64,000 nt of DNA from Zygnema circumcarinatum SAG 698-1b (GCA_037447605.1 CM074805.1:2141361-2205360), one strand, 5' to 3'; shown: positions 1-64,000, counted from the stretch's first letter. Made by a program: numbers and translations. Notes: a model not told the origin generated them from the sequence alone.

Positions 1-320
1 ACAACCGTCTTTCCTACGTTGATCTATCTGCCTCTGTTGAAAACTAATACTTTCAACCCCATGTTTGGCAGTATGGCTCTCGTCAGAGTCAGGTGCGGAT
101 GTGAGGACCGCAAGAGAAGGAAGAAAACATGCGAAAGTAATCACGAGGAGTCACATGACGGCAGATAGTCACACAGCAAACAAAAGTGAGAGAAACATGC
201 CAAAAGTAGCTTCGTATATACTAAAGCCATAGAATAAACTTTGTCACCGGAAGACCAGCGACGCGAGCAGGTGTCAGCATACAAAATTGGAGTGCCTTGT
301 GACACTGAACAGAGTACCTG

Positions 321-1148
321 TTACAAGGGCGGTCCTTTTGACACCGATTGGCCAACTTGGGACCTGTTCAAGGCTTCTTTAGCGGCCAGTTTCTTCTTCA
401 CCTCCTCCTGCAATCTCAACACCTCCCTTTCCATTCGGCGCATGCCCCTCCATGCATACGTTGCGTATAGACCCAGAGACGCTGCAGCCGCAACAATGGT
501 CCAATTGTACTCTTAAGTAACAACGTCGCTCCCAGGTATCTCCGTTAACTAAAGAAAGAAAACTAGCATAGGGAAAGGCACACGTGAACTTGCAAATTTT
601 CGAGAGTAAAGGACATCTAAGAGAGAAAGGTAATAGATTTAGAAAGGATTGGTTGAGCGTACAGTCGATATAATATGTGCAACAGTCGAGCAATTCATTG
701 CGTCCGCAATTGTTCAAAACAACGACACGTTTCAATAGAGGGGTTGAGCCCTCAGCGTCCCTTGACTTATCGAAAAAAGAAAACTAGACTCTGAAGCATC
801 GAAAATTTGAAAAAAAGGGCTTTCCTGACCCGTGGTGACCTAAAATAAATGGCCCACGCAATGCCAGGAAACGAGAACCCGTTGAAAGTCTGGAAAGTGA
901 ACACCCTCATGGACGCAAATTCTGAACATCGATAACTAGGCCATGCCATCTTAGAAAGCAGGCCCTCCCACTCCAGCTCCCATTACCCGTTTTTAGGTCA
1001 CGGGCGACTCACCAAACACACAAGCGTACGAAGCCCACACGTACGGATACTCCTCCGAATGCCTCTTCACTCTCTCCAGCTTTGCAAGCACCGTTTCTGT
1101 GGACCGCATCTGCTCTCCTTCTTGCCCCGTCCGCTGGGAATCGCCCAT
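321..1148 (-). CDS. Small single-pass membrane protein (~98 aa), plant YPYVW-motif family; exons 1013-1148 and 321-481
   Basis: ATG at 1148, G|GTGAG donor at 1012 and CAG acceptor at 482, both phase 1. Product: MGDSQRTGQEGEQMRSTETVLAKLERVKRHSEEYPYVWASYACVFASLGLYATYAWRGMRRMEREVLRLQEEVKKKLAAKEALNRSQVGQSVSKGPPL*. The hydrophobic segment is followed by a coiled coil. Family recognised from memory; not in the ORF track. Confidence 0.72.
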
Positions 1149-1939
1149 CCAAATCTTCAGTAGTTTTCCTGCGGCTGGGATGAAATCAGACCGTGTGCAC
1201 AGTCGATGAACAAAGCCAAACGAAGAGCTGCAAAAATTTGCAGCGATAATTAGGGTATCTTAACATTTTAGGTTTGAATCCGCCCTCCGAACGCTCTCTG
1301 CCCAAAACTCACAAGGCAGTCAGTCCCCATTCCCAGGCAGCAGGCAGGGTCCGCAGGGGGCTCTTCCGTACTCATTAGAAAGCAGGACCGTACCGTACCT
1401 TTTCGTTTCGTACAAACCAAGATCCATGCGCCGAAGTGAGATTTGTTTTGCGGAACAGCGAACTGGATATGTTTTTCACATAGATTTTGGATCGTCATTT
1501 GTTGCTTTCGATTAGAAATTTGACCACTTAAAGTATGCCACGTGGCATCGCACGTGTGTAACTTCCTTAAATGAGCAGCCACAGAGCCGCCGCCTGCCGT
1601 ACGGTCACGCTGGCTTCACGTGGGCGCGCGCTTGGCTTGTACGAATAGTTTGTCGGTTTGTTTGCCTTCGTACAACGCCGCCTGGGAGACAGGTGGCCGC
1701 CGCGTGAACGAAGGAGACGACAAACATTGACACGTGCGGCGTCAGACCATACGAGCGGACGACTTTCCGTACATAGGTGCTTGTACGGCAACGTGATGGA
1801 CTGTAGTAAATTATCGACACAGCATGCTCATGCGTGCGGCCGGGCTGGCGGGCACGGCCGGGCTGGCGGGCATGGCCGCATGAGGGCATGCTCCGAGGTC
1901 ACCATGACCAGTTCCGCGCCTCGAAAAGGGGCGCGGCGA

Positions 1940-2052
1940 CAGACAGCCAAGACAGACAGACAGGCAGACAGGCAGACAGACACACAGACAGAGACAGACA
2001 GAGGCAGGCACGCACACAGTCACAGACAGACAGACCGACCGACCGACCGACA
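1940..2052. repeat. (AGAC)n / (ACCG)n compound microsatellite
   Basis: gacagacag...cagacagacagaccgaccgaccgaccgacag visible directly. Confidence 0.85.
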
Positions 2053-2998
2053 GCTCTCGTTCGTTCAAGGCGGGTGCTCCACGCGCGGCAGCGAGTGGAT
2101 GGAGGCGCAGAGAGCAGTCGGGGCCAGACATGGGGCGGCATAGCACGGTGCACGGTATGCAATTGCAAGGAAGGCCCACAACACAGGTTTCCCGTCACAG
2201 TGCTTTCGCTCTTCTATGGACTTCGTCCTAGTTTCAGAAAAAAAAGAAAAAAAGAAAGGCATTCCAAGGTAATCCAGAAGCTCCCTGCACCCCTTCGCAC
2301 TCACTCGCGCAGCCGCAGTAGGCACAACGCTGCCTTCGCCTGACCAGACCCTGCTAGAAGGGGTCAGGCAAAACTCAATCTGGAGCCTGCTTTACATACA
2401 AACTAGAAAGGACTCTCAGGATCCTGAGAGCCTTCAGGCTCAAACGGACAAAACAAAAAAAGCTCCACTGCTAGCTTGGAGGCCTTCAAGCCTCGAGCCA
2501 CGCAGCCTCTTCTCCATGCTCCTTCCTTGAGCCGATTCATGTGGTATTCCTCTCTCAACCGCTTGTCGCACCACGCTTTTCAAAACAGATGATGATTGGT
2601 GCCTAAAGAGGCTAATCAAGCTCCGGCACAAAGAAGCCATCCCCATTATTTCCGAGTGGATGGAGTGCCAATCGGAAAGGCGAAACGTGTCACAGCAACT
2701 CCAGCGCTTACTTGAGAGCTCCATGATGTGCAGTCCACTCACAACTTCTCTTCCCTCTTTCCTCTGCCCCCGACTGGGCCCCAAAAATCCCATCCGCCTA
2801 AAACGCTCTTCAAGCTCGCTCCTGTCTTCTTCTTCATGAGCCTTACACTCTCCCGCTAGTCACCAGCAGAAAACGAAAGGAGACCCTTCTCTCAATCGCA
2901 ACAAGTCTGCATAATGGGCTCGATGTGTACGAAAGCCAGAAACGGCTGCTCAGTGGAAGAAAACAGACAAAGGCGAGACAAAAGTGCTTCAACAAATC

Positions 2999-5333
2999 TC
3001 AGAACATGCTCCTTCGTAGCGTGCGAGTGGTGGCCTGATAGGATCTGACAATTATGCCGACCCCAATCCCTATGCCGAGGCACATGCCCAGGCCAAGTCC
3101 CACTCCCACACGAACGCCTGCATTGAACCACGACATTTCTGGCTCCTCGCCTTCACCATATGGGCCCCCTCCATACCCGAGATCGCCGAGAGGAAGATCA
3201 TAGATGCTATTATAACCGACTGTCTGAGGCTTGTCTAGCAGGCCATCACCAGATCTCTGCACAAATACAAGCACTGCTGATATCAGAAAACAGCAGCTGG
3301 TGAGTAAGGCTGCGTCGTACAGCTTACAAGACTAGAAAGCTCTGACCGAGTTTTTGCAAACCAAATGACAGCCCATTTGACTAGAGCTCACGACACAACC
3401 AGCAAATGGGCCTATGAACCAGAAGGCTCTCCTCTTCGCAGAAAATAGACGGAACGAATTCGTTTCGTTGTTTTACACGAAACGAATCTGCAATTGCAAA
3501 AAAGACATGCACAAGATAACTAAACATTTTGGTTTCAGACAACAGAACGGCTATGCAATTTAATTCTTGTGTTTGGTTGCTCATTAGAAGGATGGAAAAC
3601 CTCTAGACACTAGAAAGGGTTTTAAAGAGAAAGGGAGACGAACGAGATAGATTCTCTGATAGACACGGCATTATATCCCCAAATAGCTGCAACTGCTAAC
3701 AGCACATAAAAACCAACATATAGTAACGGGAAACTGTCGTTCAAACAATCTACATTCCAGGCGCAGACATGCTAGAAGTTCAAATTACAGCCACACTCAC
3801 AAGCAGCAAGATAATTAGCGCTAAATCCTCAAGACTCTCTACTGAACAAGATAATTAACAAGAGGCGGAGCAAAGATCCAACGACCAGACACTAGCTGGT
3901 CAAAGCTACAAGTTAAAGCATGAAAGTACTCTATCAACCTTGTGGACATGAGATTACACAGAGCAAAAGAGCAGCAAGTCAAAAAAGGAGGGGAGGGGAA
4001 GTAAGGGGGACGAGTCAGATGAGAGGGGAGCAAAAAGAGGGGAGAGAAAGGGAAAAGGGGGAAACACAGACCGAGCCAGAAATGGGCAGAGACAGTGAAG
4101 CCTTGACAAACAAAATACGGCCCTAGCTATTACACCAGCAGTTTGGAGAACCTCATCTTCTAACGAGCATCGTCTCCGATAATGTTCTAGTTGACGCAAT
4201 ACCTGGAGGCAAGCTACAAATACATGATGATCCCCGTACATTCGTTTTCATTTTAGAACAAAAGTTAGGAGCAATTGAGATGCTCGGTTGTCAGACTGTT
4301 TGCCAAACTCTGACGGTAGACCACATGCATGCAATGAAGCGCCAGTTCATTGCGAAACAAAGATACAATCAGAAAAACACTGGCTTCTATACCAAAAACA
4401 AGCTGGGTGCAAAAGTTATATGCTACTTTCAACCAGCAAGAAACTTACATTAAGCCTGACTAATGAATTATCTGAATTGCCATCTGTTGGTGGTCCACCC
4501 CGCTGAGCGCTTGCCCTGTCTGCCTCATCCGCTTCTGGAATTGCGTCCAGGGCTACCTTCCTGAGATTTCTACGTCGAGCTGTTAGGATGACGGTCTGCG
4601 TTAAAATCACCGGCAAATTGTTGAACCTTCCGACGATACAGACCTCCATAGACGGATGAACTAGAGGAGTTGTATAGTCATGCTTTGTCCTCAAGAAGAC
4701 ACAGCCGTTGCCGCCTACAGAACAGGAACACTCTAAGGTCCAGCCTACATTCACATGGCGAGGGTGACTTGATAGCAGCACATTCCCGACGTCTCCCGCC
4801 TTTCCGTCCTGTCCATGCACCGTGCCACACAGCAACTGGTCATCGTCGTGCAAAACTTCAAAAAGGATGGAGCCACTTGTCCTCCACCTGTCCGTGCTAA
4901 CATAAGTCGCTTCTGATGATTCGCAGTCAATTCGGTCCCTCCGTAGAGTCAGAACGACTTCTTCAGATGGAGATATTCGCGCTCCATTCACCTCTACAGC
5001 ACAGCCGATATCTCTTGGTGGACACTTGAACCTCAGTGTTTCTGGCGTTACTTCATCGTCAACAGGGCAGGAACTCAACCGCACATATATAACCCGGACA
5101 TCAAACCAGCTAACTTGTCCAGCAGCTGCTGCAACGGCGCCACCCCCCTTATGTCCCCTACTCATTGCAACCTTTACATTGCGAGAAAGTCCCCCTCCCA
5201 CCTCTACACATGCTTGCTCATCCGTCGGACGACCCCACAAGCATAATTCCTCTTCAACAGCCATCCCATGGCCATGGCCTGCCATCACAGGGCCTCCTGC
5301 AGCCTCTGCAGCAGCCTCTACTAATGATTGCAT
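2999..5333 (-). CDS. At1g01500-like uncharacterised plant protein (often annotated 'erythronate-4-phosphate dehydrogenase family'); three exons (~4450-5333, ~4137-4202, 2999-~3256), C-terminal membrane anchor
   Basis: Motifs WFDVRVIYVRLS, VNGARI..LRRDRID..SEATYVSTD and MEVCIVGRFNNLPVILTQTV in ORF 4416-5333. The C-terminus EMSWFNAGVRVGVGLGLGMCLGIGIGVGIIVRSYQATTR in ORF 2999-3274 is the family's hallmark tail. Internal exon boundaries are approximate. Confidence 0.85.
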
Positions 5334-7011
5334 GGAGTCAGACCAACACCACCAAAGAAAGACTTAAACGCCTGAGAAAAAAATGTAGTTTCCCTCGGGA
5401 ATGGAAGACTTCTGCAACGATTCCGTCCCTGTTTCCTCAGGTTTTTAGGTCTCACGATAATCCATCCATCTCTCACAGTCTCCACTGCGTTTCCTCCTGA
5501 CCTCGTCCCCATCCTCCATCTGCTCAGGTCATACGTGATAGGGCCAAATGCGACAAAGAAAAGGTATTCAACACCACAAGTCTGCTCCCGACACACATTC
5601 CCTTTCAATTTCTGTCTGCTCGAAGCACTGCACCCCCCTTCCGTGAGCACCACCCACAGCCGTCCCAACCAAGTCCCTTTCTCGCCCCTTTCCGTCCTCA
5701 CCACACCCTGAAACAGAAGCTCCTGCCCCACCTCTGCCTCCCGCCGACTTCCTAAGCAGCACAGCCGCCAGTCCTTCCTTCCTGCCTCTCTCCCACCACC
5801 AGCCTCTCCCCTCCCTCCCTGCCCTCAGTCATTCTCCTCTTAAAAAACCACCCCTCTGCTCCTGCTGCCCTTCCTCAAGGAACAAGAGGGAAGCAAGCCC
5901 TGGCACCTCCACAATCGGTACCGCGCAAAGGAGCCGATCACTGGCAGGCGGCCAGAAGAGTACTCATTTTAACGGAGTTTTTGCGTCGTCCGGTCGTCGG
6001 TGTACCGTGTGAATACCTTCCGGGCACCGCCCGACCGATCGGGTCCCGCACCCCTCCGGCCAATCGTGTGGCGCCGCGGCGCGTGCCGCCGTTGGAGACG
6101 CCACGTGTGGGGGGAGCGCGCACGCACGTGTGCGGCCCGCCTTTAAGCGCGGGAGGGCGGCCCGGCCAGGCCCGTCCCTGCCTCCGTCTGTCGGGCCGAC
6201 CGAGACGACACGGGGGACTGGGACTGGAACTTTGGCGGTCTCCATGCATTCAACAGTTCGACAGTTTCGAGCACAGTCTTTTCTTTTTTGAAGGCCTTGA
6301 AACTAGTAGAGGTTGAACAGTTTTTACTACGGGCTCTCAGAGAGTCAACAGAAGAGTGAGCTTAGCGCTCTGCAGATTCTTGAGTTGAGCTCTGCGTTGC
6401 TAGGCCATTGCGATGTGCTATAGTCGTACAGGACAGAAAGGGGAAAGACAATTGCTTCTCTGCGCTCATTGAAGAACTGCTTTTCGATTCTTTTTCGCTC
6501 AACTTGCAAATGTTTTCGTGATGCCTTTTGAGGGGCCGTTCGCCTCTCCAGCAGTCGTCATTCCTATAAAGAAAGCTTGAGAACCATTTTATTGCCTAAA
6601 GAACGCGGATAAAGAATGACCCCACTTGCCAAGTACTCCGAAACACACAGCACAGATCGCAAACCAATCCCTGACCCATGCTCTTTTCTCCTCCATGACG
6701 TATATATTCCCCCCCCCNNNNNNNNNNTTCCCCCCCCCCCCCCCCCCACCCAAAAAAAAAAAAACTGAAAATGCAAATACCCAAGCAACGTCCCTATGGC
6801 CACCCTATGTTTCCATCCCTCTCAAAGGCGAAATTAAGAAAAGTCACTCCCCCCAGTTGACCCCACGTCATGATGAGCATTTCCATAGTGGGCAAAAAGG
6901 TGCAAACACATTCACCAGTCCAGTCGACCATCGAGCATTTCAACTTGCACCAATGGGGATACAGATACTCAAGTCTCCTAGCCACAGACTGCTCTCTCAT
7001 GCCCCACCGCC

Positions 7012-9452
<2,441 letters not shown>

Positions 9453-9516: not shown

Positions 9517-9595
9517 CTTTTATACGCGGCTGCTAGCGGCGCCGCGCGAGCGTTTAGGGTTCACGTCCGCTCCGCTCCGTCGCGCCGCGCCCATA
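9517..9595 (-). promoter_or_regulatory. RPL10 core promoter: TATAAAAAG, telo-box-like AACCCTA and site-II-like ATGGGC
   Basis: Minus strand has TATAAAAAG at 9525-9517, GAACCCTAAA at ~9552-9561 and ATGGGCG at ~9588-9594. Telo-box plus site II is the known plant ribosomal-protein promoter module. Confidence 0.6.
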
Positions 9596-11188
9596 AAAGA
9601 GAGCGCCCGCCAGTAGAGAGGGTCGTAGCTTCCCTCCCTCCTTCCTCCCTCCGCCTCGCCGGGCGGCGGCCGAAGGGCATGGAAGGAAGGAAGCGCCCTC
9701 GCGCTGCTGCGGCGAAGGCGTCCTGCGCACTGCCGGCTGAGCAGTAGTGACAGGGCGGGAGGTCAGCGGTCTTTGAGGAGGCGGTGGTAAGAAAGTTTGT
9801 GCAGACAAACAAAGAGGAGTGAACCAGGAGCTACAACTGCTCGTTGCGTGAATGGACGACTGCGTGCTTTGCAGTGGTTATCATCGCTAGTGAAGGGAAA
9901 GGAAAGAAACAGTCGTTATGGTGCGGCCTGTAGAGAGATAGAACGGTAGCTTTGCAAAGTGGTCTGAAGGGGATGAACTTTGTGACAGTTAGTAAATATG
10001 CATCTGCTTGCGTTGCGATTTCGCATGCTTCACGAAGGCTACGAGGGATTAGTCAAAGTGCGGGCGTTATGACATGTTCAAGTTGTCCAGCAGGAGGCAA
10101 AGCCGACCTTGGGCAGATATGAAGAAAAGTCCTAAGAGTCGGTAAAGGAAATGAAATATCCAAGATGTGGAGAAAGAACTCGCGAAGGTCTTCTGCCATC
10201 TCCAGATGGATAATTTTCTCCAAACGACTCAGGAAGGAGCTTTCAAATAGGCCATGTCAAACTTAAAAATCGTCAGTAGCATTGAAGGAAAGGCATCAGT
10301 CACTCGGATACCAAAACGAGTACTCTGTGGACATAGCGATCCGCTTGCAAAACTGTGCTCCGTATATGTTATCTTTAGTACTACTTACGAAAGAGAGAGG
10401 GAGGGAAATGGCAAGAAAAAACTTCCATTTGATTTTGTGAAGTCTGGCATGCCCTAATAGCAACATGACAAGAAGAATATCCATAGGATGACAGCTCGCA
10501 AAGCAAGCGCCACAAGCGCGTCACGAGCACACGGTCAGCGTTGGCCAGGCTGAGCCGACCGTGAATCCTTTGATCCGTTGTTATTTTTTTGAGCCATAGA
10601 GATGCAAGGTGCAATTGTGAACAGCACAAGAGAAAGCTGAACTGTTGTACTTAAGTCCAAACGTAGGAAGCAACCTATTCAAACAGCACCGCACAGGCTT
10701 CCACAAATTACAGTGTTTACTGAAATGCCGGACTTGGAAAATGGAAGTGTTTCTTCGACTATCTCCACGGTACTATACTGAACACTACCGCAGTCTTGTA
10801 CGCAAAGCCGATTTTCAAAGCTTTTTTCTCATCCTTTTCTGTACATCACCTATACTGATATGTATCTTTATACCACCAGTACTCTAGTAGAAGCTCACAA
10901 GGTCATATTCATCATGACCGCACCTTTCGTAGTATTTGCTGTTCCCTTTTTCCACTGAGATTGTCCAACCTTGCATGACTCGAGGTTTTTGACCATTCCA
11001 TTTCAAACAGTATTTGCTCCCAAAAGATCAAAGAAGCACGGGCGCATGGTAACTGGTTCTTAAACGCAGATACGAAGTACATTCGCAATGAGAAAACCAC
11101 CAAAAGGACATGGAGAATGAGAATTGTTGGAAAAAATCACTGTACAGCAGGATCCCTCTGACTTGTCACTGGCACAAACAGCACCCCT

Positions 11189-12805
11189 CTAATTTCTGCC
11201 TCGCTTCTTCTTCACTGGAAACAGCTTTTTGCCCGTCACACCAATTAAGTCTACGTGGAGATTCTCCCGAACCAGGCGCCTCCTAACGACCTCTTTATTG
11301 ATGCAGATTTTACACAGAGTGAACTTCAAGGGCGCATATTGCATTGCAGCCTCGTGACGCACTGGAAACTCTCCACGCAAACCGCATGAGCGACATGCCC
11401 GCTTGCTGTACAGGCTGCGCCACTGCCGTGAAAAACACAACATCAGCAAAGCTATTTGAAACATGAACATAACATAATTAAAAAAAACATAACTGAAATT
11501 GAAAAATGCTTTACTTGCTTCAACTAATGAACCTGCCTCCTGTGATCCACGAGTTCTGACTTACAGTGAACAGCCTCAAGCAATCACAGACTACAAGGAC
11601 CAGGGACACAGCGAAATCTCCCATTCCCAACAAACTGATAAATGATGATGCCAAACACGGCTTGTGACACGTCATGTTCCTGAAAACTGGCCATGACATG
11701 GCATGCAGGATCAAGAAAAGCATCAGTCGTCAACATGTATTACTTTGAAAAAAAGCGAACAGTCAAACTTACAGGAAAACAAACTTTACAGGATAGACCC
11801 CTGGGGAAACGAGGGAGGTTCCAACGTCGTTGATCACACTCCTGCTTAAAGATGAGCTCAGCAGCTTCCGCCCAACTCTTGCATACCTGAAATGAAGCAT
11901 CGACAAAATCAAGTTTTTAGAGGATGAACACTCTACGAAGTCACGAAACTACTACGCCACATGCAGGACCACGATACACAACCACAACCGCAAATGTATA
12001 GCTGCGTCGAAGAGCAGCATATGCAAGTCTCATTTAGCCGACATGTGGGATTGAGAAAAACATGGAGGCAAGCATATCAGGATACTCGTATTTAAATTAA
12101 ACGCTGGGTTCATCAGGCATTGTTTCGGAACTTTCAAGGCCATCATTAGTTGAGCACACCTGAGAGGCTTGGAGTAATTGGGGTAAAGAAAGACAAGAGA
12201 GGATGTGCTGAAGCAGGTCAGCTTGTGATCCATTTGTTAGCTGCTCCAGAATATTGGAACTGCAAGCGCCAGCTATAACCCTGAACAGGAACGCCTGCTT
12301 TGGACTTTCAAGGAACGCACTCTGCGCTGGCATAACTCCACGTCAACCAAAACGACAATGTTATTGAGCAACTCTTCACATGCTCAACCACATATATGAT
12401 GAATAGCCTCTAAACTCCCCTACCAGCTGATTCTACAACATACAGCCTGATGCCAAGGCAGAAGACGAACATCAGGAAGTTCAATGCAGGCGCCAAAATC
12501 GACTTTTGAGTAAATACAGCATGACAAGGAATAAAGAACACACTCACAAATGACAATTATTATTGAAAGAGAATGGATAAAATCTGCAATCACATACCTT
12601 CTATAGAAGGTCTGCGTTTTCCCAGCATAGAAGTTCTCCTCCTCCTAGTAGAATCTCCAGCACTATTTACATTGAAGCCCGAGCATTCATTCAGACCTTG
12701 CGACACCTTATTCGAAATCAGAGTGTTTTTAACCGGCTGAATTCTCTGTTCTACACCTTCTACATAACGTACAGTTTTTCCGCCTATGACAAGTTCCTCT
12801 TCCAT
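11189..12805 (-). CDS. F-box protein with three C-terminal CxxC motifs (~240 aa); exons 12598-12805, 12160-12326, 11773-11886, 11189-11422
   Basis: All three introns are GT-AG and phase-compatible (1,0,0). F-box-like segment DLLQHILSCLSLPQLLQASQ|VCKSWAEAAE, then LSCKVCFP|WRSLYSKRACRSC...LCKIC. Confidence 0.75.
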
Positions 12806-15822: not shown

Positions 15823-16937
15823 TACATTGTACTTTTTGGGCAGTGGTCACGTGGGTAGGTGTGTACGAACCCTAGTGAGCATGTGTACGGTCACGTCGAT
15901 ATCTGACGATAATTGTCGATAATGTGTACGGTCAAACTATATTTGTAACGTATACTCCGATACGTGGGTATATAATATCGAGATTTTGAATATATAGTAA
16001 CCATTAGGGCTTTTCAAATGTCATTATATCCGTAATGGCGTCACTACTGGCGCAGGATCTACAGTGGTGCGATTCCGTTCCTGGAAAAAAACGTCATTAT
16101 AAAACATTGTTACTATAACGCGAGTACACTGTATGGACGTTATGTCGTGGTTCGTTCCATTCAAGGGCACCTTTGTTGACGTCGGCCAATGGATGTTGTC
16201 ACGTAAGCATGGCTGCGCGCCAGCGTGGCAACAGCCCCGCACATGGCGTTGGCACTTATCCACGTCTGCGTTTTGCGGAACCCGTCGCGTTCGTGCGCAG
16301 GAGAGTTCAAACGCAGAACGCGATCGCGTGTTTCCAATCGCACGCCGCCACGTGGGCCAAAAAAAGCTCTCGTCCAACCCGGACCCGCGTCGCGCCACGA
16401 TCGCTCGGCGGAGGCGAGGTCCGCCCGCGCTGTCACGGAGATTCATGGCCTCCATCACTTGTCATTCTTTTTTTTATTTTTTTAGCATAGCATCAGATTT
16501 ACAGTAGCGTGAATGGCGACAGGACGCTGCAGCCAGAGCTGCCTCCCTTGCCAAACTTTTCTAGAATTTGTTAAAAAAATCTGTAGCGCCGTTGAGTAGT
16601 CACAGGCGAGGCAAGAGTCACCCTGAACCGTCCAATTCCTCACATACGGCCCCGCCTGAAGATCAGACACAGGCAATGCCCCATACAAGTTGGTCCACTC
16701 ATCTCCTTCACTTCAGGTCAACGCTCCGATTCTAACTGTTCCATCGCAACATTAGAGTAACCACTGCCACAATCTCTTGCACCGCCGCACTCCAAACGTG
16801 TGCCGCCTCTTTTCCATCGCTACTCCATACATCAATAAATAATGTCTATTTGCGTGCACCCGGGCCGTCCCTTGTACCAAAATGGACGCAGGGCCAGCTC
16901 GTGGGGCACATAATTTGCCGAGTACAATGCCTACTAC

Positions 16938-37130: not shown

Positions 37131-38034
37131 GGCTGCGACCGCCTCTATCCTCAAGTGCCCCTCGACTTTTACCCCTCCGCTCCAATTTTCCTTACTTTTG
37201 GCGTCGCTGCCCGCGGACAGAAAAAAAAGCGTTTGGGAGGGAACCAGGGAGCGACACGTGACGGCTAATGGCGATTTTGCATGGGATGACACGTGGCAGG
37301 CACAAGGCTACGGAGACATGTCACATGGAAAGACGGAGAATAGTCAAACGGAGAGACACGGAACTGTGTTCACAGAGTGTGCAGAAAACTGGCCCTGGCC
37401 CTGGCCCCTCGGGCCCTCAGGTGGGCGGGCGGCAGCCAGGAGCGAGGCGGTGGGGGGGGTCAACATGTGGCGGTTTGAGCGCTCGATGCGCCATAATTAC
37501 AAAATGAAAGTTATTTCTGAGGCTCCATTAGATTCACGTTTATTAGAAACTAAATGTAGCTTCAATTCAGAGAGGCGCAATGAAGAAAAAGAGCTTGAAG
37601 TCGATAAGTACTCATGGAATTTGCCTTTTTATTTCCAACCATGCATTAACTCGGTCGGTGCCTATGATCCCGAATGCTTCCCTGAAACCCTAATGAAATG
37701 CCCTCATGCTTCAGTAGCCCTCTTTTTCTAATGTTGCAGATGTCAGCAACAGAACTTTATTGCCGCAGCAAGCGCATGCATGCATGCAGGCAGCACACCC
37801 ACTAACGTGCCCCTCCCTCTACTCTGTGCCGAAATCGAATCGGACGGCTTCGCCATAGACGTCGCTCACTGCAAAACGGGTCTAAATAAATAAACTGCGT
37901 TCCAGGCTCTTCAGTAGACACGTTATTTGCTGCACCTCAAGACTGATAAGTGCAGACGCGGAACACTTCCAGCAGCAAAAGAGTGACGGGACAGTTGCGA
38001 GTGAAGGACTGTTTCACTCCCGCACTGTTCGCGC

Positions 38035-45293: not shown

Positions 45294-45599
45294 NNNNNNN
45301 NNNGGGATCTCCGACGGACCGACACAAATGAAGGGGCCCAACCACGGAAAAGCCCGTTGAGTCGGTTTGGCGAGATTCCTGAGCCAAATGAGCTGACGGG
45401 GCGCGACCTGATTGGGCGGGAGAGCAGCGCGTCGGCGCCTCCCAAAGTCGGTGAGTTGTCGTCTGTGCGCGCGTTCGAGGTGGTGGGAGGCCATGGAATC
45501 TAGGGTTTGGAAGCGGAGGGCCAGGAGCTGAAGCTGGGCGACCCGATCCGGGGAAGCGTCATACGTAGAAAGAATTTCAGCCGAAGAGGAGGAAGTCAG

Positions 45600-55492: not shown

Positions 55493-56532
55493 GCTTGGCT
55501 ACTTGCTATTCCAGGCAGTCAAACCTGCCACCTCAGTCGTCTGCATTGTTCGCATTCTTTCATTATTCCATAAGCACCTTGTTACCTTGCTTCGCTGAAC
55601 ACGATCTTCTCTGCCAACAGCGTCATAGTCAGCCATGTGCATCCTCAACTCGCTGTTTCCGTTTCTTTTTCCACATCCCAGAGGATGCCAACACCATCAT
55701 CATCATCCTTCGAGCCGAACTGTGCATTCAATGGGCCAAAGCTTGTGGAGAGGACTAGTGCTCCTTCTCCCTACAACTTTGAGGCGTATAATTACTTATA
55801 AGTAAAAGTTTTCTTAGAAAATTAGGAAGTTATAAATACTTTTAGTAACAATTAGGTTTTTAGAATTTGTAGTTTATGTTAGTACTGGAGTTAAGAAATA
55901 CTTACAGTTTATAGTTTAGTTTGAATAAATGCTGGAGGCAACAGCTGTCATCGAGATGTACAGAGTTCTTATAGATACTTTTTTCTGCCCCTGCTTGAAC
56001 CTCCCTGACACCAGCATCAAGTACACATGCTCTCAAATAGGCATAGGAGACATTTGCCTTTTCACGCTGACAGTGGATAATTGTACACATATTTTGTGAC
56101 ACAATTTATATATTTTTTTTGTTGCTCACGAAGGAGAATTAACATAATATCTCATGTTTATTCGACTGGAAGAAAATGTGAACATCGATTTGCACAACCC
56201 TTTGCCGTGTTCATGCGAAGATGTTCTCGTAACCGCCCGCAGAGCTAAAACCCTAACACAGACTGAGAGAACAAGGAAAGCTAGCTACAAAACCTGCCCG
56301 CAAAAGACAACTGAAATGTAATATGAGTGCTCCAACACACTCTTATCAACCAGACAAAACTCCAAAACAGACAGCGCCAGAGACCGGCACAAAGAATAAA
56401 GAGGAACTTAACCTCTCCCCATATCTCTAACTGCGCCTCTCTGAATCATATTCAAGTGGGTTTCATGGTAAAACAGGGTCGCCGGTAACTGAAAGCATAA
56501 CCGGTCACTACTGCGTCTTCAAACTCCCACGG

Positions 56533-57052: not shown

Positions 57053-60000
57053 TCACTTCTTTCTCCCACTTGTCGGCTTTGCAGCAGCCTTGATGGCCCT
57101 CTCATACGCAGGGTTTCCAGGAGCTGCGACGTGGTGGTTGGCAACACTCCACTGCTCATTACAGAGCGTGTCCAAAAACTCCTTATTGTGAGAAATAATG
57201 ACAACTGCGCCACCATAGTCCTTGATGGCACCCGCAAGCGCTCCTAGGGAGTCACGATCAAGGAAGTTGGTCGGCTCATCTAGCACCACCATGTGAGGGT
57301 TGCTCCACATGGCTGCAGCTAGAACCACCTTCACCTTCTGCCCTCCTGCACAGCACAAAAAACACATCCCACATGCATGCCTTCAGTTACCCAGAGTCGC
57401 ATGCAGTCATAGTTAACACAAAAAAAAAAGCCCACTATAGACACCCATGTTAAGGAAATCTGAGAAGACGAGGGACCGACGAAGGGGCTGGAAATGAAAT
57501 AAAAACTATAATTGCAATCTTCAAGTTGATCCAAACAGGGCCCTCTTATCAGACAGCATGTTATCAGCAACTGCGCATACACAGTTCTCACTCCAGTCAC
57601 CACTACCTTTCATGTGCCCCCACATTAACCAGCAAGCAAAATGGGTGATGAGAAACAAACTAGTGTATTGCCCGTACCTGACAAGTTCTTGATCTGCCCG
57701 TAAGTTCCGAACTCAGCATCAAGCCCAAAATCGTCAAAGTGTTGCTGGACACCCGCAATCGTGCAGGGTCGCGAATAGAGCCCTAATCGAGCCACCTCCT
57801 TGGAATCAATCTCATGCACGAGCTTAACGAAGCCCATGTCCTCTAAGAGCTCCCGCGACAACCAAGTGTTGAAGACGTCTTTCATCCCCACCCACTGCAG
57901 CCCCGACAGCTCCAAACAGTTCAGACACAGCAACACATACAGACCATTTCATTTTCCACTTTCACTGCATACAGTATCATAACAGTCATCACATCGACAT
58001 CCCCCATCAGAGTTCTTGAAAAGAAAGCAATTCGAACTCACTATCAACAGAAAACTCTGAAAGTCAAACAGTACATCTAACAAGAAAGCATAGCATAGTA
58101 AACTTGCACAAGGCACATCCTTAAAAGAAATCAGCTCCATGCACAACAGAAGTATTTGATATTAATGGACAAAAAACGTTAGAACCAGCCTGCCGGTCTG
58201 TCAACAGCCCTCTAGCTAGCATGCATGGAAGGAGTGTGCACACCTTCACTTCATATTCGTATGATTTCTTGGACTTGCGACGACCAAGTAATCGCTCCAC
58301 TTGCTTCCTCTGCCCGTTGTGCATAATAAGCTCCTCCATTTTCTTTTCCTCATCCTTAGAAATTTTTCTAGTTACCTGGTTGCAAGTCCAGAGAAGAAAG
58401 GTCAGTGCAAACCCCAACATTTTCTGGCTCCTTAGCTCCATCTTACAACTAAAAATGTGCAGATTGAAGCGTAAGTCAGGACCACTGCAATCTACCATCC
58501 ACACTCTGTTCATAGTACGATGATTCACTTGTTCAACCGACATTCAGAACCCCACACTCCACAGAAACCTCAAAAGAAGCTACTTCGCTAACGATCACTG
58601 TACTCCACTTTCCTCACCCAATTGCCACTGTTGAACCCAATTTGACAGGAAAAAACTTGCTCCAGATCCTCACAACTTTCTATTGTTGAAACCAGTGGAA
58701 GTCGCAAGCCAGCAGCATAACTCAACAACAATGACGAATCAGCACCATAAGCTCACTCAACATCCCCAGCATCTGCTTTGGCCACAGCTCCAAATGCCTT
58801 CTGCCAGCATTCTCTGGAAAAAAACCACAGTTTCCTGCTATAGGTCGCACCTTGTTCTGCTCTTCCCGGTCTTCCCCTCTATCAAAACGCCAGCGAATGT
58901 ACTCGTTGGGACTCTTTTCCAAATGCTGTTCCACGTGATGAAATGCATGCTGCGCAACATATGCAATACCCAAGTTGGGATGTTTCCAGACGCTTCCAGT
59001 GGTAGCCTTCAGCTCTCCTGTAATAAGCTTGATCAAAGTGGACTTTCCAGCTCCATTGGCTCCCAGCACAGCCACACGGCCGCCCAGGCCACACTGCACA
59101 TTCACATCTATAAGCTGCGGTTTATCACGCCCAGGATACGTCACAGATACATTCGTCAACTTTAAGATTGGGGTCTCCTTGCGCTTGATACCCTCCAAGA
59201 ATCCAGGCTCGGGAAACTTGTACTTGAAAGGAGAAGCATTAAGGTCGTAGTAAACTTTGCCAGCAGGGTTCACCTGGACATCACGTTGCAAAGCAAAGTT
59301 TTACGTGCAGCTCTTCTAGCAGGTGTCCATATTTCAGGAGATTGCAATGAGTATTCAACAGCATACCTAAGATAAATACCATGCGCTTGTAACATCCAAG
59401 ACAGGAGGTGTCTGCATGTTAAATATTGTGAAATGCCAAAGCATATTCATCACCGTCAACAAGTCAACACCTCAAACTATGCGACCAATCTTCGTTATGA
59501 ATGTACCTTCACAAATGCAGCGAGGTTGCCCTTGTAGTGCACCAGTTTGCGCTTCTCATAGTGGATGATATCGGTGCACACATTGTCAAGGAATCCCGAG
59601 TCGTGTGACACAATCATGCATGAGACTGTCTTCATAGAGGTAAGATAATGTTCAAGCCATGCAACATTTGTCACATCAAGATGATTTGTCGGCTCATCTG
59701 TTTCAGCCCATTTTCCAAAAGCCAAGTCAGAACAAGTAACACACGGACACTGCAACTGCAGGACCAGGACAAATGTGGGACGTGAACAACACAAAGCCTC
59801 CTCTTATGTTGACAACACGAGCACAAGAAACAGACCTCAAGGGAACATACACCTAATTACTACTGAAAAAGTATATCCCTCTAAAAACAGGACAAATGCA
59901 TAACTTTTTCTGGCCAGCTTCTGCAGGCAATAATCGTTTAACCTGGGAACCAAAACCACTGTCGAGCGAAACTGCAACAACTAGGATCACCCAAACGAGC

Positions 60001-63000
60001 TAATGATCATCATGCTCCCGTCTACGCCCCAACATGCGCATCTGTAACATGTCAAATACTTAATCGTTATCTTTCCAGTTAAAAGTGAAAGAGACCATGA
60101 AGTTATGTGATGTTACGCACCTAGCAAGAGAATGTCGGCTCCAAAGAGTTGCGCTCGGACAAGTGCCAGCTTCATTTTCCATCCACCAGAAAGCGAAGTG
60201 ATGGGAGAAGTAAGCATTGACTCGGTGAATCCAACGCTTTTCAGCGTCTCCTCAATCTCAGTCTCTGACTTTCCTGCGAGCAGCTTGTCTTTCAACAACA
60301 CATCAACAGGGTTGAAATCGACCAATGACGAGTCAAGGTCATGCTCGACATAAATTGTTTTCAGAACCTCTGCAGGCGGAAAACCATCCAACTTCCCGTT
60401 TGAAATGGCTCGCATTAGTGTTGACTTCCCTGCCCCGTTATGGCCACAAAGTCCATATCTTCTACCCCTCTTCAACCATAGCCGTGTGCTGTTCAGTAAA
60501 ATCTTTCCACCATAGCCTAAAGAAAACTCGCAGTCACAGAGGTCCTCGCCCTCGTCATCATCATCCACTGCTTGGTCACTCTGTCGGCATGACTCCACAA
60601 TCCGAGTTAGGAAAGTTTTGCACACTGTCTCAGAGTCTTCGCCCCAAGGGGCCAAAAATGGTTCCAGGTAGGGTGTCACGCACTTGTTCCATTCTGCGGT
60701 GGACAAAACAAGCCAGGCAAACGTGCATCAAGTAAGTCTAAGCATACATCTGCAGCGTACACTGTTTCAAGAAGCAATCAAAGGAAACGGTATGTGTGAC
60801 AAAATTTTCAAACAAAGACCAAGTGGTGTCTACAGAGCAGCAGCAGCAGCAGCAGGGTAGCGCTATCCATATAAGCCTACGTCCTTCAATGTGCACTGAT
60901 CTCCCAAAATCTCCTCTCAACGTAACTGGGAAAGCCCCACCGGTTGCCTCCAACCTGCTCTCCTCAACTGCTAATTGGGCATAACAAAGGCTTGGCAGAT
61001 GGGCCAGCGAAAAAGCCAAAAAATATCAGGAACTTAGTTCTAGACTTTGTTAGGGTTGAACCTCTTTAACTCTTGCTCTAGTGTGAAAGACAGCCAAGAT
61101 ATGAAGCATGGTCGAGTAATTTTTTTACATTCATACATACTCGGCGTATCTTCAGCCTTCAGCCGCTTCTAAAAAAAAAAGGCAGCCTTGCAATTCGCAT
61201 ACACTATTGAACATTTGATGGTGCAGTTTCTCACCTTCCACTTCAAAGCACTTGCTGATGATGAGTCCAGAGCACATTCTCGCGACATAGTCCAAAGTCT
61301 GTTTAAACAATGGCGCGTCAGCTTCCTCTCGCGCATTTGAGGCAATGACACTCTTAAGTACCGACAACACCACTGCTGGGTCTGCTTTCTTCTCCAACTC
61401 CTTCTGATCAGACTCCTCAACATCTTTCTGCATACTTTTCAAAGCTTTCACCACCTTTGCGCCGGTCGCTCTACACTCTGGATCAGCCACTTCTTCACTC
61501 ACACGCTCCACTCCAGGGAGCAACTGTGGCAAAAAAGGTGCAGCCTCTGATGGATCATCAACAAGTCGGGTCATGTTATCTATGACCACGACTGTACGTC
61601 GTTTCACAATTGTAGCTCGCTCCTTCATTCCTCTAATAAGAAGGGGCACCATAATTGAAAGAGCAGGTGCTTGAACAGCTTGCACGAAGGTAATGCCAGA
61701 CAGCTTGTAGATGCACTCAGGCACCTGGGCCGGTTTGACAATACAGTCAACCAGTTCGGGCACAAACTCTTCGATATCTCGGTTTCCAATTATACTGGCC
61801 ACTTCTGACATAGTCTCATACGCAGCCTTCATTACTTGCTCTTTTCCATCAACCATATATCCCGATAACAGTGGCACAATGTCGGGCAAACACCGAGCAA
61901 TCTGCCGAGGCCCCGTTTTCGCCAGCTGAGACAAAAGGAGAATACTGCCTTCTTGCGCTTTCCAGCTTTTTTTCTGGTTGGCACCGTCAAATATGACTGT
62001 TGACAAAAGCCGTGAAACCCAAACAAATACGAACAAGAAAAAGCACAATCACCTCATTAGAACCATCACATGGCGTCACAGGCATGAAGTTCAGAGCAAG
62101 ATGCACATCAGACAGAAGTGAAGTGTAATTAAAAGGCAAAGAATAAATCCCTCCCACCAGCCCCCCTCTAACTGACATCTCAATCCACCCTAGAATTCAT
62201 ATGACAACTCTAGAAAAAAACCAGCAAAACATGAAGTTACAAAGAATCCCGCGTCTAGAATAAACCCAGCAACCGGTTATTGGAACTCGCAGGTAGAGGG
62301 GCAAATCATTCAGCCAGCACTTCTGAAAATAGGACACATTTGAAGTAAGCTGACCTGGCAGAACAATCTTGATCGCATGTGGGCATAATATGTTCATGAG
62401 CGCCTTCGCAGCGTTCTCTGCAGCTAGTTTCACGGGTACCACTTTGTCGCCTATCCTCTCGAGAAGCATGGGCAGCAACTGGACCAGATGCGGCTCACAC
62501 GTGTGGCCCACTTGTTCACAGAGCGTCGCATACAAAACTAGTGCGCCTTCTCGACCAAGGGCACTTTTTTGGTCATCCATGGCCGCTCTCATTTTGTCAA
62601 AGAGCCCAGACGACTGCAAAAGAAAGCATAAAGAACAACTAAAAAATAAGAAATAAGAACAGAGACAAGGTGTTCAGAAAAAGAAGCTATATCAAAGGAA
62701 CTTGCTGTCCAAACGACAATAACCTAACCGTCCCACCAACCGCCTTCACTTTTTTTTTGCGAATAGAAGATTAGAAGGGACTTGCTTGCAGAGCTTGCTT
62801 CGGTCCCATGGACACATCCGGTACTGTATACACATGCCCAAAGGCAACGGTGCATACATGCCCACAGACAACGGAGAGATCCAGCTTTCAACTGGAACAT
62901 CAAAACACATAGATCTGTATGCAAGCAACTAGAAATTCCAGAGAAGGGTCTGTGATGCATCTAACGCGATCAGTACAGCTTTCTGATCAGTCACGGCTGA

Positions 63001-63681
63001 CTTTCAACCATGGCCCAATCATGGCGAAGCTTCAAAAAAGCGTTGACGATGCTTTCGAGGAGACGAATCAAACCCATTAGCAGGCACGGACCCGCCTATA
63101 CACCTTACAAAACATCGTGAAAGCCTATGCTCGCAAAATACGACTGTTTGAGATGAGAAGCTAAGAAAGTCGTTTGAAACTAAAACAAGCATATACACGG
63201 TCGTATTGACGATCACCAACACGACGGTACGACATACGTAGCTGCAAGACGATCAACCAGAGTCAACGGCACTTGACTATAACATGTGCGTGCTCTTGTT
63301 TAAAAAACAGTTGATGAGCAGTGTATTGTAGAGACTTTAAAAGGTTACATCCGCCCAAGACAAAAATAAATCCTTAGAACGTGGCAGAAAAATCTCTTGC
63401 AGGTTATCCGGAAAAAAACTACTGCAAAATATCCAGCCAACACTCTTCACAGTTTTCATCATTAAGATTCTCAACCACCAAACTCCAAACCATCCCACTA
63501 TCCTCTCCAACGAACACGCCCTACTTTCTCCACACGCCCTCCGCACCTGCAAAACTGCAACGCCGCTTGCTTTCACAGCCGCAGTCAACTCCATGGACGC
63601 GACCCTCCGCTCAGGTAGCGACTGCGCGGCCATGACGCTCTGCCACAAGTCGCCGACCTTCCCGCTGCCATCGCCAGCCAT
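57053..63681 (-). CDS. eEF3: Translation elongation factor 3 (eEF3): HEAT repeats, two ABC cassettes, chromodomain insertion; ~9 exons
   Basis: HEAT region ([17 protein letters not shown]; [14 protein letters not shown]; [19 protein letters not shown]). ABC1 [52 protein letters not shown]2 [21 protein letters not shown] with chromo insert [19 protein letters not shown]|WVGM..NTWLSRE, then [28 protein letters not shown]. Confidence 0.95.
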
Positions 63682-63699
63682 GGCGGATTCGCCTGCGCG

Positions 63700-63707
63700 A
63701 AACCCTA
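63700..63707 (+). promoter_or_regulatory. Telo-box AAACCCTA 19 bp upstream of the eEF3 ATG
   Basis: Exact octamer. A G-box CCACGTGG lies at 63877. Confidence 0.6.
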
Positions 63708-64000
63708 GCAGAGAGGAGCGGAACAGTCGGCCCTGCAGCAGCAGGCAGGCAGGCAGGCAGGCAGGCCCTCCCTCCCTCCCTAACTTGGAGCGCGAGGGGC
63801 GAGTCGGCCGCTTGCAGCACAAAAGGGCAGCCTTTCTCCCTCCCTCCCTCCGTGGGCCCGCGGACCGCAGGAACCGCCACGTGGACGCGGCCAGCGGACG
63901 GCCCAGCGCCACCGCCCGCGGATCGCACGGCTGGCGGCGGCGCGTCAACGCGCAAGGGGCGGGCGGGCGGTGGGCCCGGGGGGCGGCGCCGGCCAATCGC

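Follow-up and report, generated by a model that had tools for sequence, protein, structure and literature searches.

We analysed a 64-kb window of DNA from the zygnematophyte alga Zygnema circumcarinatum SAG 698-1b (GCA_037447605.1 CM074805.1:2141361-2205360). Here, "the window" means this whole stretch, and positions are counted from its first letter. The subject of this study is a minus-strand gene inside the window (57053-63707, including a short upstream motif) that codes for a protein of the eEF3 type. Descriptions of the translation factor eEF3 usually present it as a fungal protein that plants lack, and for this reason it has been considered as a target for antifungals. An earlier note, made from the sequence of the window, had described the locus as a complete eEF3 gene in a streptophyte and had connected it with a plant telo-box upstream of its start codon. 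The ribosomal protein gene RPL10 lies in the same window and on the same strand. Below, we describe the gene and its transcripts, its relatives and its neighbourhood, and then the explanations of them.

The gene consists of nine exons on the minus strand, and its coding sequence includes 2985 nt (994 codons and a TGA) from the ATG at 63681 to the stop at 57053. All eight introns are of the GT-AG type, and the exons include no internal stops. The base composition of the gene is that of the window. The similarity searches were performed exon by exon, or with two full-length relatives (P0152 and P0001) as proxies for the whole protein. Exon 1 (63547-63681, 45 codons, with the ATG at 63679-63681) encodes the start of the N-terminal HEAT domain. 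This exon was placed by reading the sequence, and its N-terminus agrees with the full-length transcript of the closest relative. No in-frame ATG was found upstream of this start up to the end of the window, although the reading frame stays open there. Exon 2 (62355-62613) encodes HEAT repeats (Pfam HEAT_EF3_N, E 3e-20). Exon 3 (61235-61996) encodes the rest of the HEAT repeats (HEAT_EF3_GNC1, E 1e-35, and HEAT_EF3_N, E 1e-19) together with a region that aligns to the four-helix bundle of yeast eEF3. The Pfam four-helix-bundle domain was not reported in the scans of single exons; exon 3 aligns to yeast eEF3 through residue ~378, and PF17947 (four-helix bundle) is present in the close relatives P0001 and P0153.

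The remaining exons encode two ABC cassettes. Exon 4 (60121-60693) carries the Walker A motif GHNGAGKST and the LSGG signature of ABC1, and intron 4 interrupts the codon of the Walker B Asp of this cassette. Exon 5 (59507-59697) completes ABC1 with EPTNHLD and the H-loop SHD. ABC2 begins in exon 6 (58851-59273) with the Walker A motif GANGAGKST. It is interrupted by a chromodomain insert, of which exon 7 (58244-58375) encodes the first half, ending in YEYEVK, and exon 8 (57678-57894) the second half (WVGMK...NTW) before the sequence returns to ABC2. Exon 9 (57053-57345) includes the signature, Walker B and H-loop of ABC2, ends in KPTSGRKK and is followed by the TGA at 57055-57053; it was assigned from its motifs and from the ends of its closest relatives. 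The single-exon Pfam scans placed ABC_tran on exons 4, 6 and 9, and the domain matches were above the curated cut-offs. Both cassettes have kept intact versions of Walker A, LSGG, the Glu of Walker B and the H-loop. Intron 7 interrupts the chromodomain motif, and RNA contigs confirm that this intron is spliced out. Either half of the motif alone falls below the reporting level of Pfam, and relatives, including P0152 (79% identical), have PF00385 Chromo at the position of exon 7. Thus, the full HEAT-ABC1-ABC2 (chromodomain) architecture without disabling stops, as claimed in the earlier note, is present in nine clean exons with their Pfam domains and intact motifs.

Public RNA data contained most of this stretch in six runs from three studies, and 57720-63719 was compared with four of these runs. 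The exact borders of introns 1-7 were confirmed by spliced contigs from three runs, one per study. These cover both splices of exons 2 to 7 and the acceptor of exon 8 at 57894. The donor of exon 8 at 57678 was assigned from the GT, the reading frame and the homologues. Intron 8 and the 3′ end of the gene are placed by the frame, the GT-AG borders and the same end in relatives, and the reads extend over 57720-63719 only. Sequencing depth was ~135-5800 in exon bins versus ~0-130 in mostly intronic bins. This difference indicates RNA with a small share of pre-mRNA, and the gene is thus transcribed and spliced as modelled. In addition, a minor alternative splice form was seen in one run, in which 62786-63546 of intron 1 is retained and a GC-AG intron runs from 62785 to 62614 (junction 62786|62613); its depth was 28 versus 278 for the main form. 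Furthermore, one RNA contig with exons 1-3 extends ~2.7 kb upstream of 63719, past the end of the window. This extension could be a long leader or additional exons at the 5′ end, or it could belong to the transcript of an overlapping neighbour. None of the gene's words was present in the 2017 RNA study (X7), which is uninformative here and is no sign of silence.

In a search against the PDB, the HEAT exon (exon 3) scored 157 bits with yeast eEF3, 103 with New1 and 83 with GCN1. The full-length proxy P0152 scored 831 bits with eEF3, 768 with New1 and 212 with ABCF1. A search of representative sequences with the HEAT exon found a 995-residue protein with 69% identity from the zygnematophyte Netrium digitus. 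Word searches with the full-length relatives listed, among the best 120 matches, two proteins of Mesotaenium endlicherianum, three of Spirogloea muscicola, several of Closterium and one of Chlorokybus; chlorophytes, early-diverging fungi and protists ranked below these streptophyte algae in the same best 120. The tblastn identity to the window gene was 79% for P0152 (a Logan transcript), 74% for P0153, 68% for Netrium, 67% for Mesotaenium, and ~60% for Closterium and Spirogloea. A second set of sequences from the same genera was ~54% identical.

Two maximum-likelihood trees were built with exons 3, 4 and 6 of the window gene as separate rows; exon 9 was too short and was left out. In both trees, the three exons grouped with P0152 and P0153 in a clade of Zygnematophyceae only, which we call clade A (Shimodaira-Hasegawa-like approximate likelihood ratio test, SH-aLRT, 100). 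Clade A also includes members from Netrium, Mesotaenium, Closterium and Spirogloea, and it has a long, fully supported stem. Its sister is a second zygnematophyte clade, clade B (SH-aLRT support of 99 for A and B together), and both are nested in a green-algal group with support of 85-96. The branching order of the zygnematophyte relatives resembles the phylogeny of the class. The trees used basidiomycete orthologues, labelled by PDB scores, as stand-ins for the S. cerevisiae proteins YEF3 and NEW1, whereas GCN20 and generic ABCF proteins were compared by PDB scores.

These comparisons leave three assignments aside. First, the protein is not New1: Meira P0064, which is New1 by its PDB scores (758 versus 601 for eEF3), was distant from the window exons in each tree, and the scores of the window gene and its proxy with New1 were below those with eEF3. 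Second, a generic ABCF protein is ruled out by the scores of P0152 (212 with ABCF1, 831 with eEF3). Third, the protein is not fungal eEF3 in the strict sense, as the window exons fall outside the clade of fungal eEF3. Pisolithus P0271, which is eEF3 by PDB scores (970 versus 718 for New1), grouped in both trees with Mucoromycota copies and not with the green clade of the window exons. Meanwhile, homologues in giant viruses are many (399 viral contigs matched in IMG/VR); the chlorovirus copies cluster with Micractinium, and the streptophyte clade includes no viral sequence. The phylogenetic comparison with New1, ABCF and chlorovirus homologues proposed in the earlier note thus places the New1 and chlorovirus copies elsewhere, and the PDB scores disfavour ABCF.

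Two further observations concern these homologues. The eEF3-like copies on chlorovirus-sized genomes (contigs L007-L086) group with Micractinium, a relative of Chlorella hosts, and this fits capture from a host. In addition, P0288, a 980-residue eEF3-like protein that NCBI lists under Rhizobium sp. AAP43, matches the Micractinium proteins P0290 and P0295 in length and has a similar identity to the query. It is probably algal contamination of a bacterial assembly.

By the nomenclature of Murina et al. (2019, PMC6723617), the window protein is classed from its tree position as eEF3L, since it is non-fungal and groups with green-algal sequences; it nests among members from Coccomyxa, Myrmecia and Chlamydomonas. 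It shares with the eEF3L described there the HEAT repeats, ABC1 and an ABC2 with chromodomain, probably also the four-helix bundle, and has no Arm-type architecture. The domain order is also that of S. cerevisiae eEF3 (YEF3; PDB 2IW3, 7B7D), the ATP sites are intact in both, and P0152 aligns to the yeast protein across residues 59-974. New1/Elf1 (PDB 6S47) has the same core architecture and is likewise a lineage-specific paralogue beside a canonical copy.

However, the C-terminal end is different. Clade B proteins, like those of Chlorokybus, chlorophytes and fungi, continue past ABC2 for ~60 residues; this tail includes a conserved DAFGN motif and a tract rich in Lys and Arg, and its end is acidic. 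The window protein stops ~14 residues past the core and lacks this conserved tail, including the lysine-rich part present in yeast eEF3. The same short end was found in its closest clade A relatives (P0152, P0153 and Netrium), while the clade A proteins of Mesotaenium and Spirogloea have longer ends that are unrelated to the conserved tail. The loss of the tail is confined to clade A. According to PMC6723617, the basic tract of yeast eEF3 belongs to its eEF1A-binding region, a basic tract is also retained at the C-terminus of New1, and the C-terminal extension is common but not universal in eEF3L (which "commonly includes" it).

Copies of both clades are present in Mesotaenium, Spirogloea and Closterium; examples from clade B are ME000121S00097 in Mesotaenium and SM000021S06412 in Spirogloea. 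Clade B proteins belong to the same algal class and have the same core domains; they are ~54% identical to the window gene and keep the full tail. From the trees, clade A is best described as a zygnematophyte-specific paralogue whose origin was a duplication of the canonical clade B gene. Because the relatives keep a tailed copy and clade A has lost the tail, the window gene cannot simply be taken for the alga's canonical elongation factor; it is probably a derived paralogue, and neither the only nor the canonical eEF3 of the alga. The earlier description as an eEF3 gene in a streptophyte therefore needs to be narrowed: a complete and expressed member of the eEF3/eEF3L/New1 group is present, but it is a tail-less eEF3L paralogue and not fungal eEF3. 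In Closterium sp. Naga37s-1, the clade B gene is one unbroken tblastn block (L003:4776-8150) and seems to be intronless, in contrast to the eight introns of the window gene. Downstream of that clade B gene (9838-11235) are five exact telo-boxes; two of them have identical flanks and may mark a repeated element.

The genomic context is partly shared with Closterium. In Closterium sp. Naga37s-1 (L001:10001-19190) and NIES-68 (L004:6001-15011), RPL10 follows directly after the clade A gene on the same strand. The two genes are ~480 bp apart in NIES-68, and they are fused into one gene model in Naga37s-1. The order and orientation are the same in the window, where the eEF3L gene (63681-57053) and RPL10 (ATG at 9452) are both on the minus strand, but they are ~48 kb apart, with other genes and retroelements between them. 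In addition, the block ends of the tblastn alignments suggest that introns 4, 5, 7 and 8 of the window gene are shared with Closterium clade A. The synteny with RPL10 and the apparently shared introns point to vertical descent and disfavour contamination.

Telo-boxes were found at both genes. At RPL10, an exact AAACCCTA on the plus strand (9282-9289) lies in intron 1, ~160 nt downstream of the ATG at 9452, and is thus antisense to this minus-strand gene. A sense-oriented AACCCTAAA on the minus strand (9553-9563) lies ~105 nt upstream of the ATG and ~30 nt upstream of a TATAAAA. The similar element that the earlier note had reported for RPL10 is therefore present as an exact copy, but this copy is intronic and not upstream. 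In both Closterium species, AAACCCT likewise precedes RPL10 in sense orientation, and a 5′ intron of the gene contains TAGGGTTT in antisense. Thus, three zygnematophytes share one layout, a sense telomere-like motif before the TATA box and an antisense TAGGGTTT in the 5′ intron (window 9282-9289, 9315-9321 and 9553-9563; L001:16363-16372 and 16790-16797; L004:12141 and 12612). Telo-box enrichment at ribosomal protein genes has been called specific to land plants, based on tests in Chlamydomonas and Ectocarpus only (PMC3212954). The layout at RPL10 suggests that the telo-box control of ribosomal protein genes known from plants is older than land plants, and this dating would fit the reported algal origin of the telo-box-binding TRB proteins, which occur across streptophyte algae (PMC12616469).

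At the eEF3L gene, the telo-box that the earlier note had placed just upstream of the start is exact: AAACCCTA occupies 63700-63707 on the plus strand, with 18 nt between it and the ATG. It is antisense to the gene, whose coding strand reads TAGGGTTT, and it is the sole such motif within 62600-64000. The exact motif occurs five times in the window versus 1.57 expected, and at least five copies were present in 2 of 100 shuffles. The three other exact copies (37685-37692, 45501-45508 and 56248-56255) are not tied to a translation gene: one is ~350 bp from a formamidase-like gene, one lies in a long terminal repeat retroelement, and one is ~800 bp downstream of the stop of the eEF3L gene. In the Closterium relatives, no exact or 7-mer telo-box was found in 1.5 kb (Naga37s-1) or 6 kb (NIES-68) upstream of the clade A gene, or in 4.7 kb upstream of the clade B gene (one species). 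The 5′ untranslated region of the P0152 transcript (~145 nt) also has neither. Two other features lie further upstream in the window. A GC-rich stretch at 63745-63830 includes short (CCTG)n and (GGGA)n runs, and GGGCCCAC with the site II core GCCCA is found at 63852-63859, ~146 nt upstream of the telo-box; the latter is a weak signal given the base composition.

The motif at the eEF3L gene could be a chance 8-mer without a regulatory role, and the gene would then stand outside any telo-box regulon. The single antisense copy, its absence at the Closterium orthologues of both clades and in the P0152 5′ region, and the three exact copies not tied to a translation gene all agree with this explanation. 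However, at 1.57 copies per 64 kb, an exact copy would fall within 30 nt of any one ATG with a probability of ~7e-4, and plant telo-boxes typically occupy such a position, near the start of genes for translation. Moreover, TRB proteins occur across streptophyte algae (PMC12616469), and the RPL10 motifs are kept here and in two Closterium species, so a telo-box regulon probably exists in this class. Taken together, we give the chance origin somewhat less than an even probability. As the RPL10 layout is conserved and the eEF3L motif is not, the telo-box link is conserved for RPL10 and only suggestive for eEF3L. The gene resembles the plant telo-box/TRB regulon in its exact AAACCCTA near the start codon and in the telo-box motifs of RPL10 in the same window, and it differs in that its own motif is single, antisense and unconserved. 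Regulation of the gene by the telo-box may therefore be considered, but the statement that it is wired to a plant telo-box goes too far for one antisense 8-mer that is absent at its orthologues.

Considering these results, we think it quite likely that this is a genuine, transcribed, nuclear zygnematophyte eEF3L gene, inherited vertically, which encodes a tail-less clade A paralogue that acts on the ribosome in a yeast-like manner. The structure of the gene, its splicing and transcription, its domains and motifs, its place in the trees, the lost tail and the synteny with RPL10 are direct results, and the action of the protein on the ribosome is deduced from its modules. The protein carries the core modules of the ribosome-active yeast eEF3: the HEAT repeats, a region that aligns to the four-helix bundle, two intact ABC cassettes and the chromodomain in ABC2. 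By analogy with the mechanism of yeast eEF3 (PMC7957392), these intact modules would allow it to bind the translating 80S ribosome across the head of the 40S subunit and the central protuberance. The chromodomain would keep the L1 stalk open, and ATP hydrolysis would drive late translocation and the release of the E-site tRNA. In its history, clade A would have arisen by duplication of the canonical clade B gene and then shed the basic/acidic tail.

Several points weigh against this interpretation. To our knowledge, biochemical or genetic support for the function of such proteins comes from fungi and oomycetes only. Among non-fungal proteins of the eEF3 type, only that of Phytophthora has been shown to complement yeast (PMC5754060). 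The lost region corresponds to the eEF1A-binding one of yeast eEF3, so the protein may not act as a general elongation factor, and the relatives possess a canonical tailed paralogue. With regard to the data, intron 8 and the 3′ end lie beyond the read coverage, one RNA contig reaches ~2.7 kb further upstream, and YEF3 and NEW1 themselves are represented in the trees by PDB-labelled basidiomycete orthologues.

Some of these points could be explained if clade A were a specialised paralogue comparable to New1, which would act on a subset of ribosomal states (termination/recycling, stalls, stress or assembly), with the tailed clade B protein as the general factor. Such a division has a precedent in fungal New1 (PMC7145556). 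It would agree with the loss of the tail throughout clade A while clade B, Chlorokybus, chlorophytes and fungi retain it, with the presence of both copies in three genera, and with the long, fully supported stem of clade A. However, the modules that contact the ribosome and both ATP sites are intact, and all three RNA studies yielded deep spliced contigs, as would be found for a bulk translation factor. The linkage with RPL10 is conserved as well. Furthermore, crystal structures were reportedly obtained with C-terminally truncated yeast eEF3, so the tail would be dispensable for folding and ribosome binding. We consider such a specialisation a serious alternative, made so by the lost tail, though less likely than not.

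That the gene is foreign, by contamination of the scaffold from a fungus or chlorophyte or by recent transfer from a giant virus, is close to refuted and seems to us hardly credible: eEF3-like genes are common in giant viruses, and viral transfer is deemed possible for eEF3L generally in PMC6723617, but the gene has eight spliceosomal introns, of which introns 1-7 are confirmed in the alga's own RNA, its base composition agrees with that of the window, its nearest relatives are Zygnematophyceae that branch like the class phylogeny, its order and orientation with RPL10 are those of Closterium, and its streptophyte clade has no viral members. Thus, neither contamination nor silence, two of the objections raised in the earlier note, applies to the vertically inherited eEF3L gene that we favour.

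The distribution of eEF3-type proteins bears on the time of their loss in plants. The searches found them, among streptophyte algae, in Mesotaenium, Spirogloea, Closterium, Netrium and Chlorokybus. Klebsormidium and Chara were not among the best 120 matches of either word search (down to ~50% identity), which is not evidence of absence. Likewise, no land-plant protein was among the best 120 matches of either search, though chlorophytes and chytrids with 50-55% identity were listed. In the survey of Murina et al. (PMC6723617), the entries of Physcomitrella and date palm have no eEF3-type protein, and no streptophyte alga was sampled. Our literature search found no publication linking eEF3 with streptophyte algae. 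As these proteins are present in Chlorokybus and Zygnematophyceae and none were seen in land plants, the comparison fits a loss of eEF3 on the stem of land plants. The value of the gene for dating this loss, as put forward in the earlier note, is therefore real but shared: the timing agrees with the land-plant stem, and it is already implied by gene models in public databases for Mesotaenium, Spirogloea, Closterium and Chlorokybus.

In addition, PMC6723617 associates eEF3L with EFL. Streptophytes except Mesostigma are reported to use EF-1alpha (PMC2652445), so clade A occurs in a lineage with EF-1alpha and not EFL, and these algae would be an exception to the association.

For the biology of this family, finding intact, expressed genes in the nearest algal relatives of land plants confines the loss in plants to the land-plant stem, and these genes would run counter to the reported association of eEF3-like factors with EFL instead of EF-1alpha. 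A paralogue without the eEF1A-binding tail also offers a natural experiment on the role of that tail. The telo-box layout of RPL10, kept between this alga and Closterium, may matter too. Furthermore, if the gene acts on the ribosome as proposed, a comparison of zygnematophyte and bryophyte ribosomes could reveal how the ribosomes of plants became independent of eEF3.

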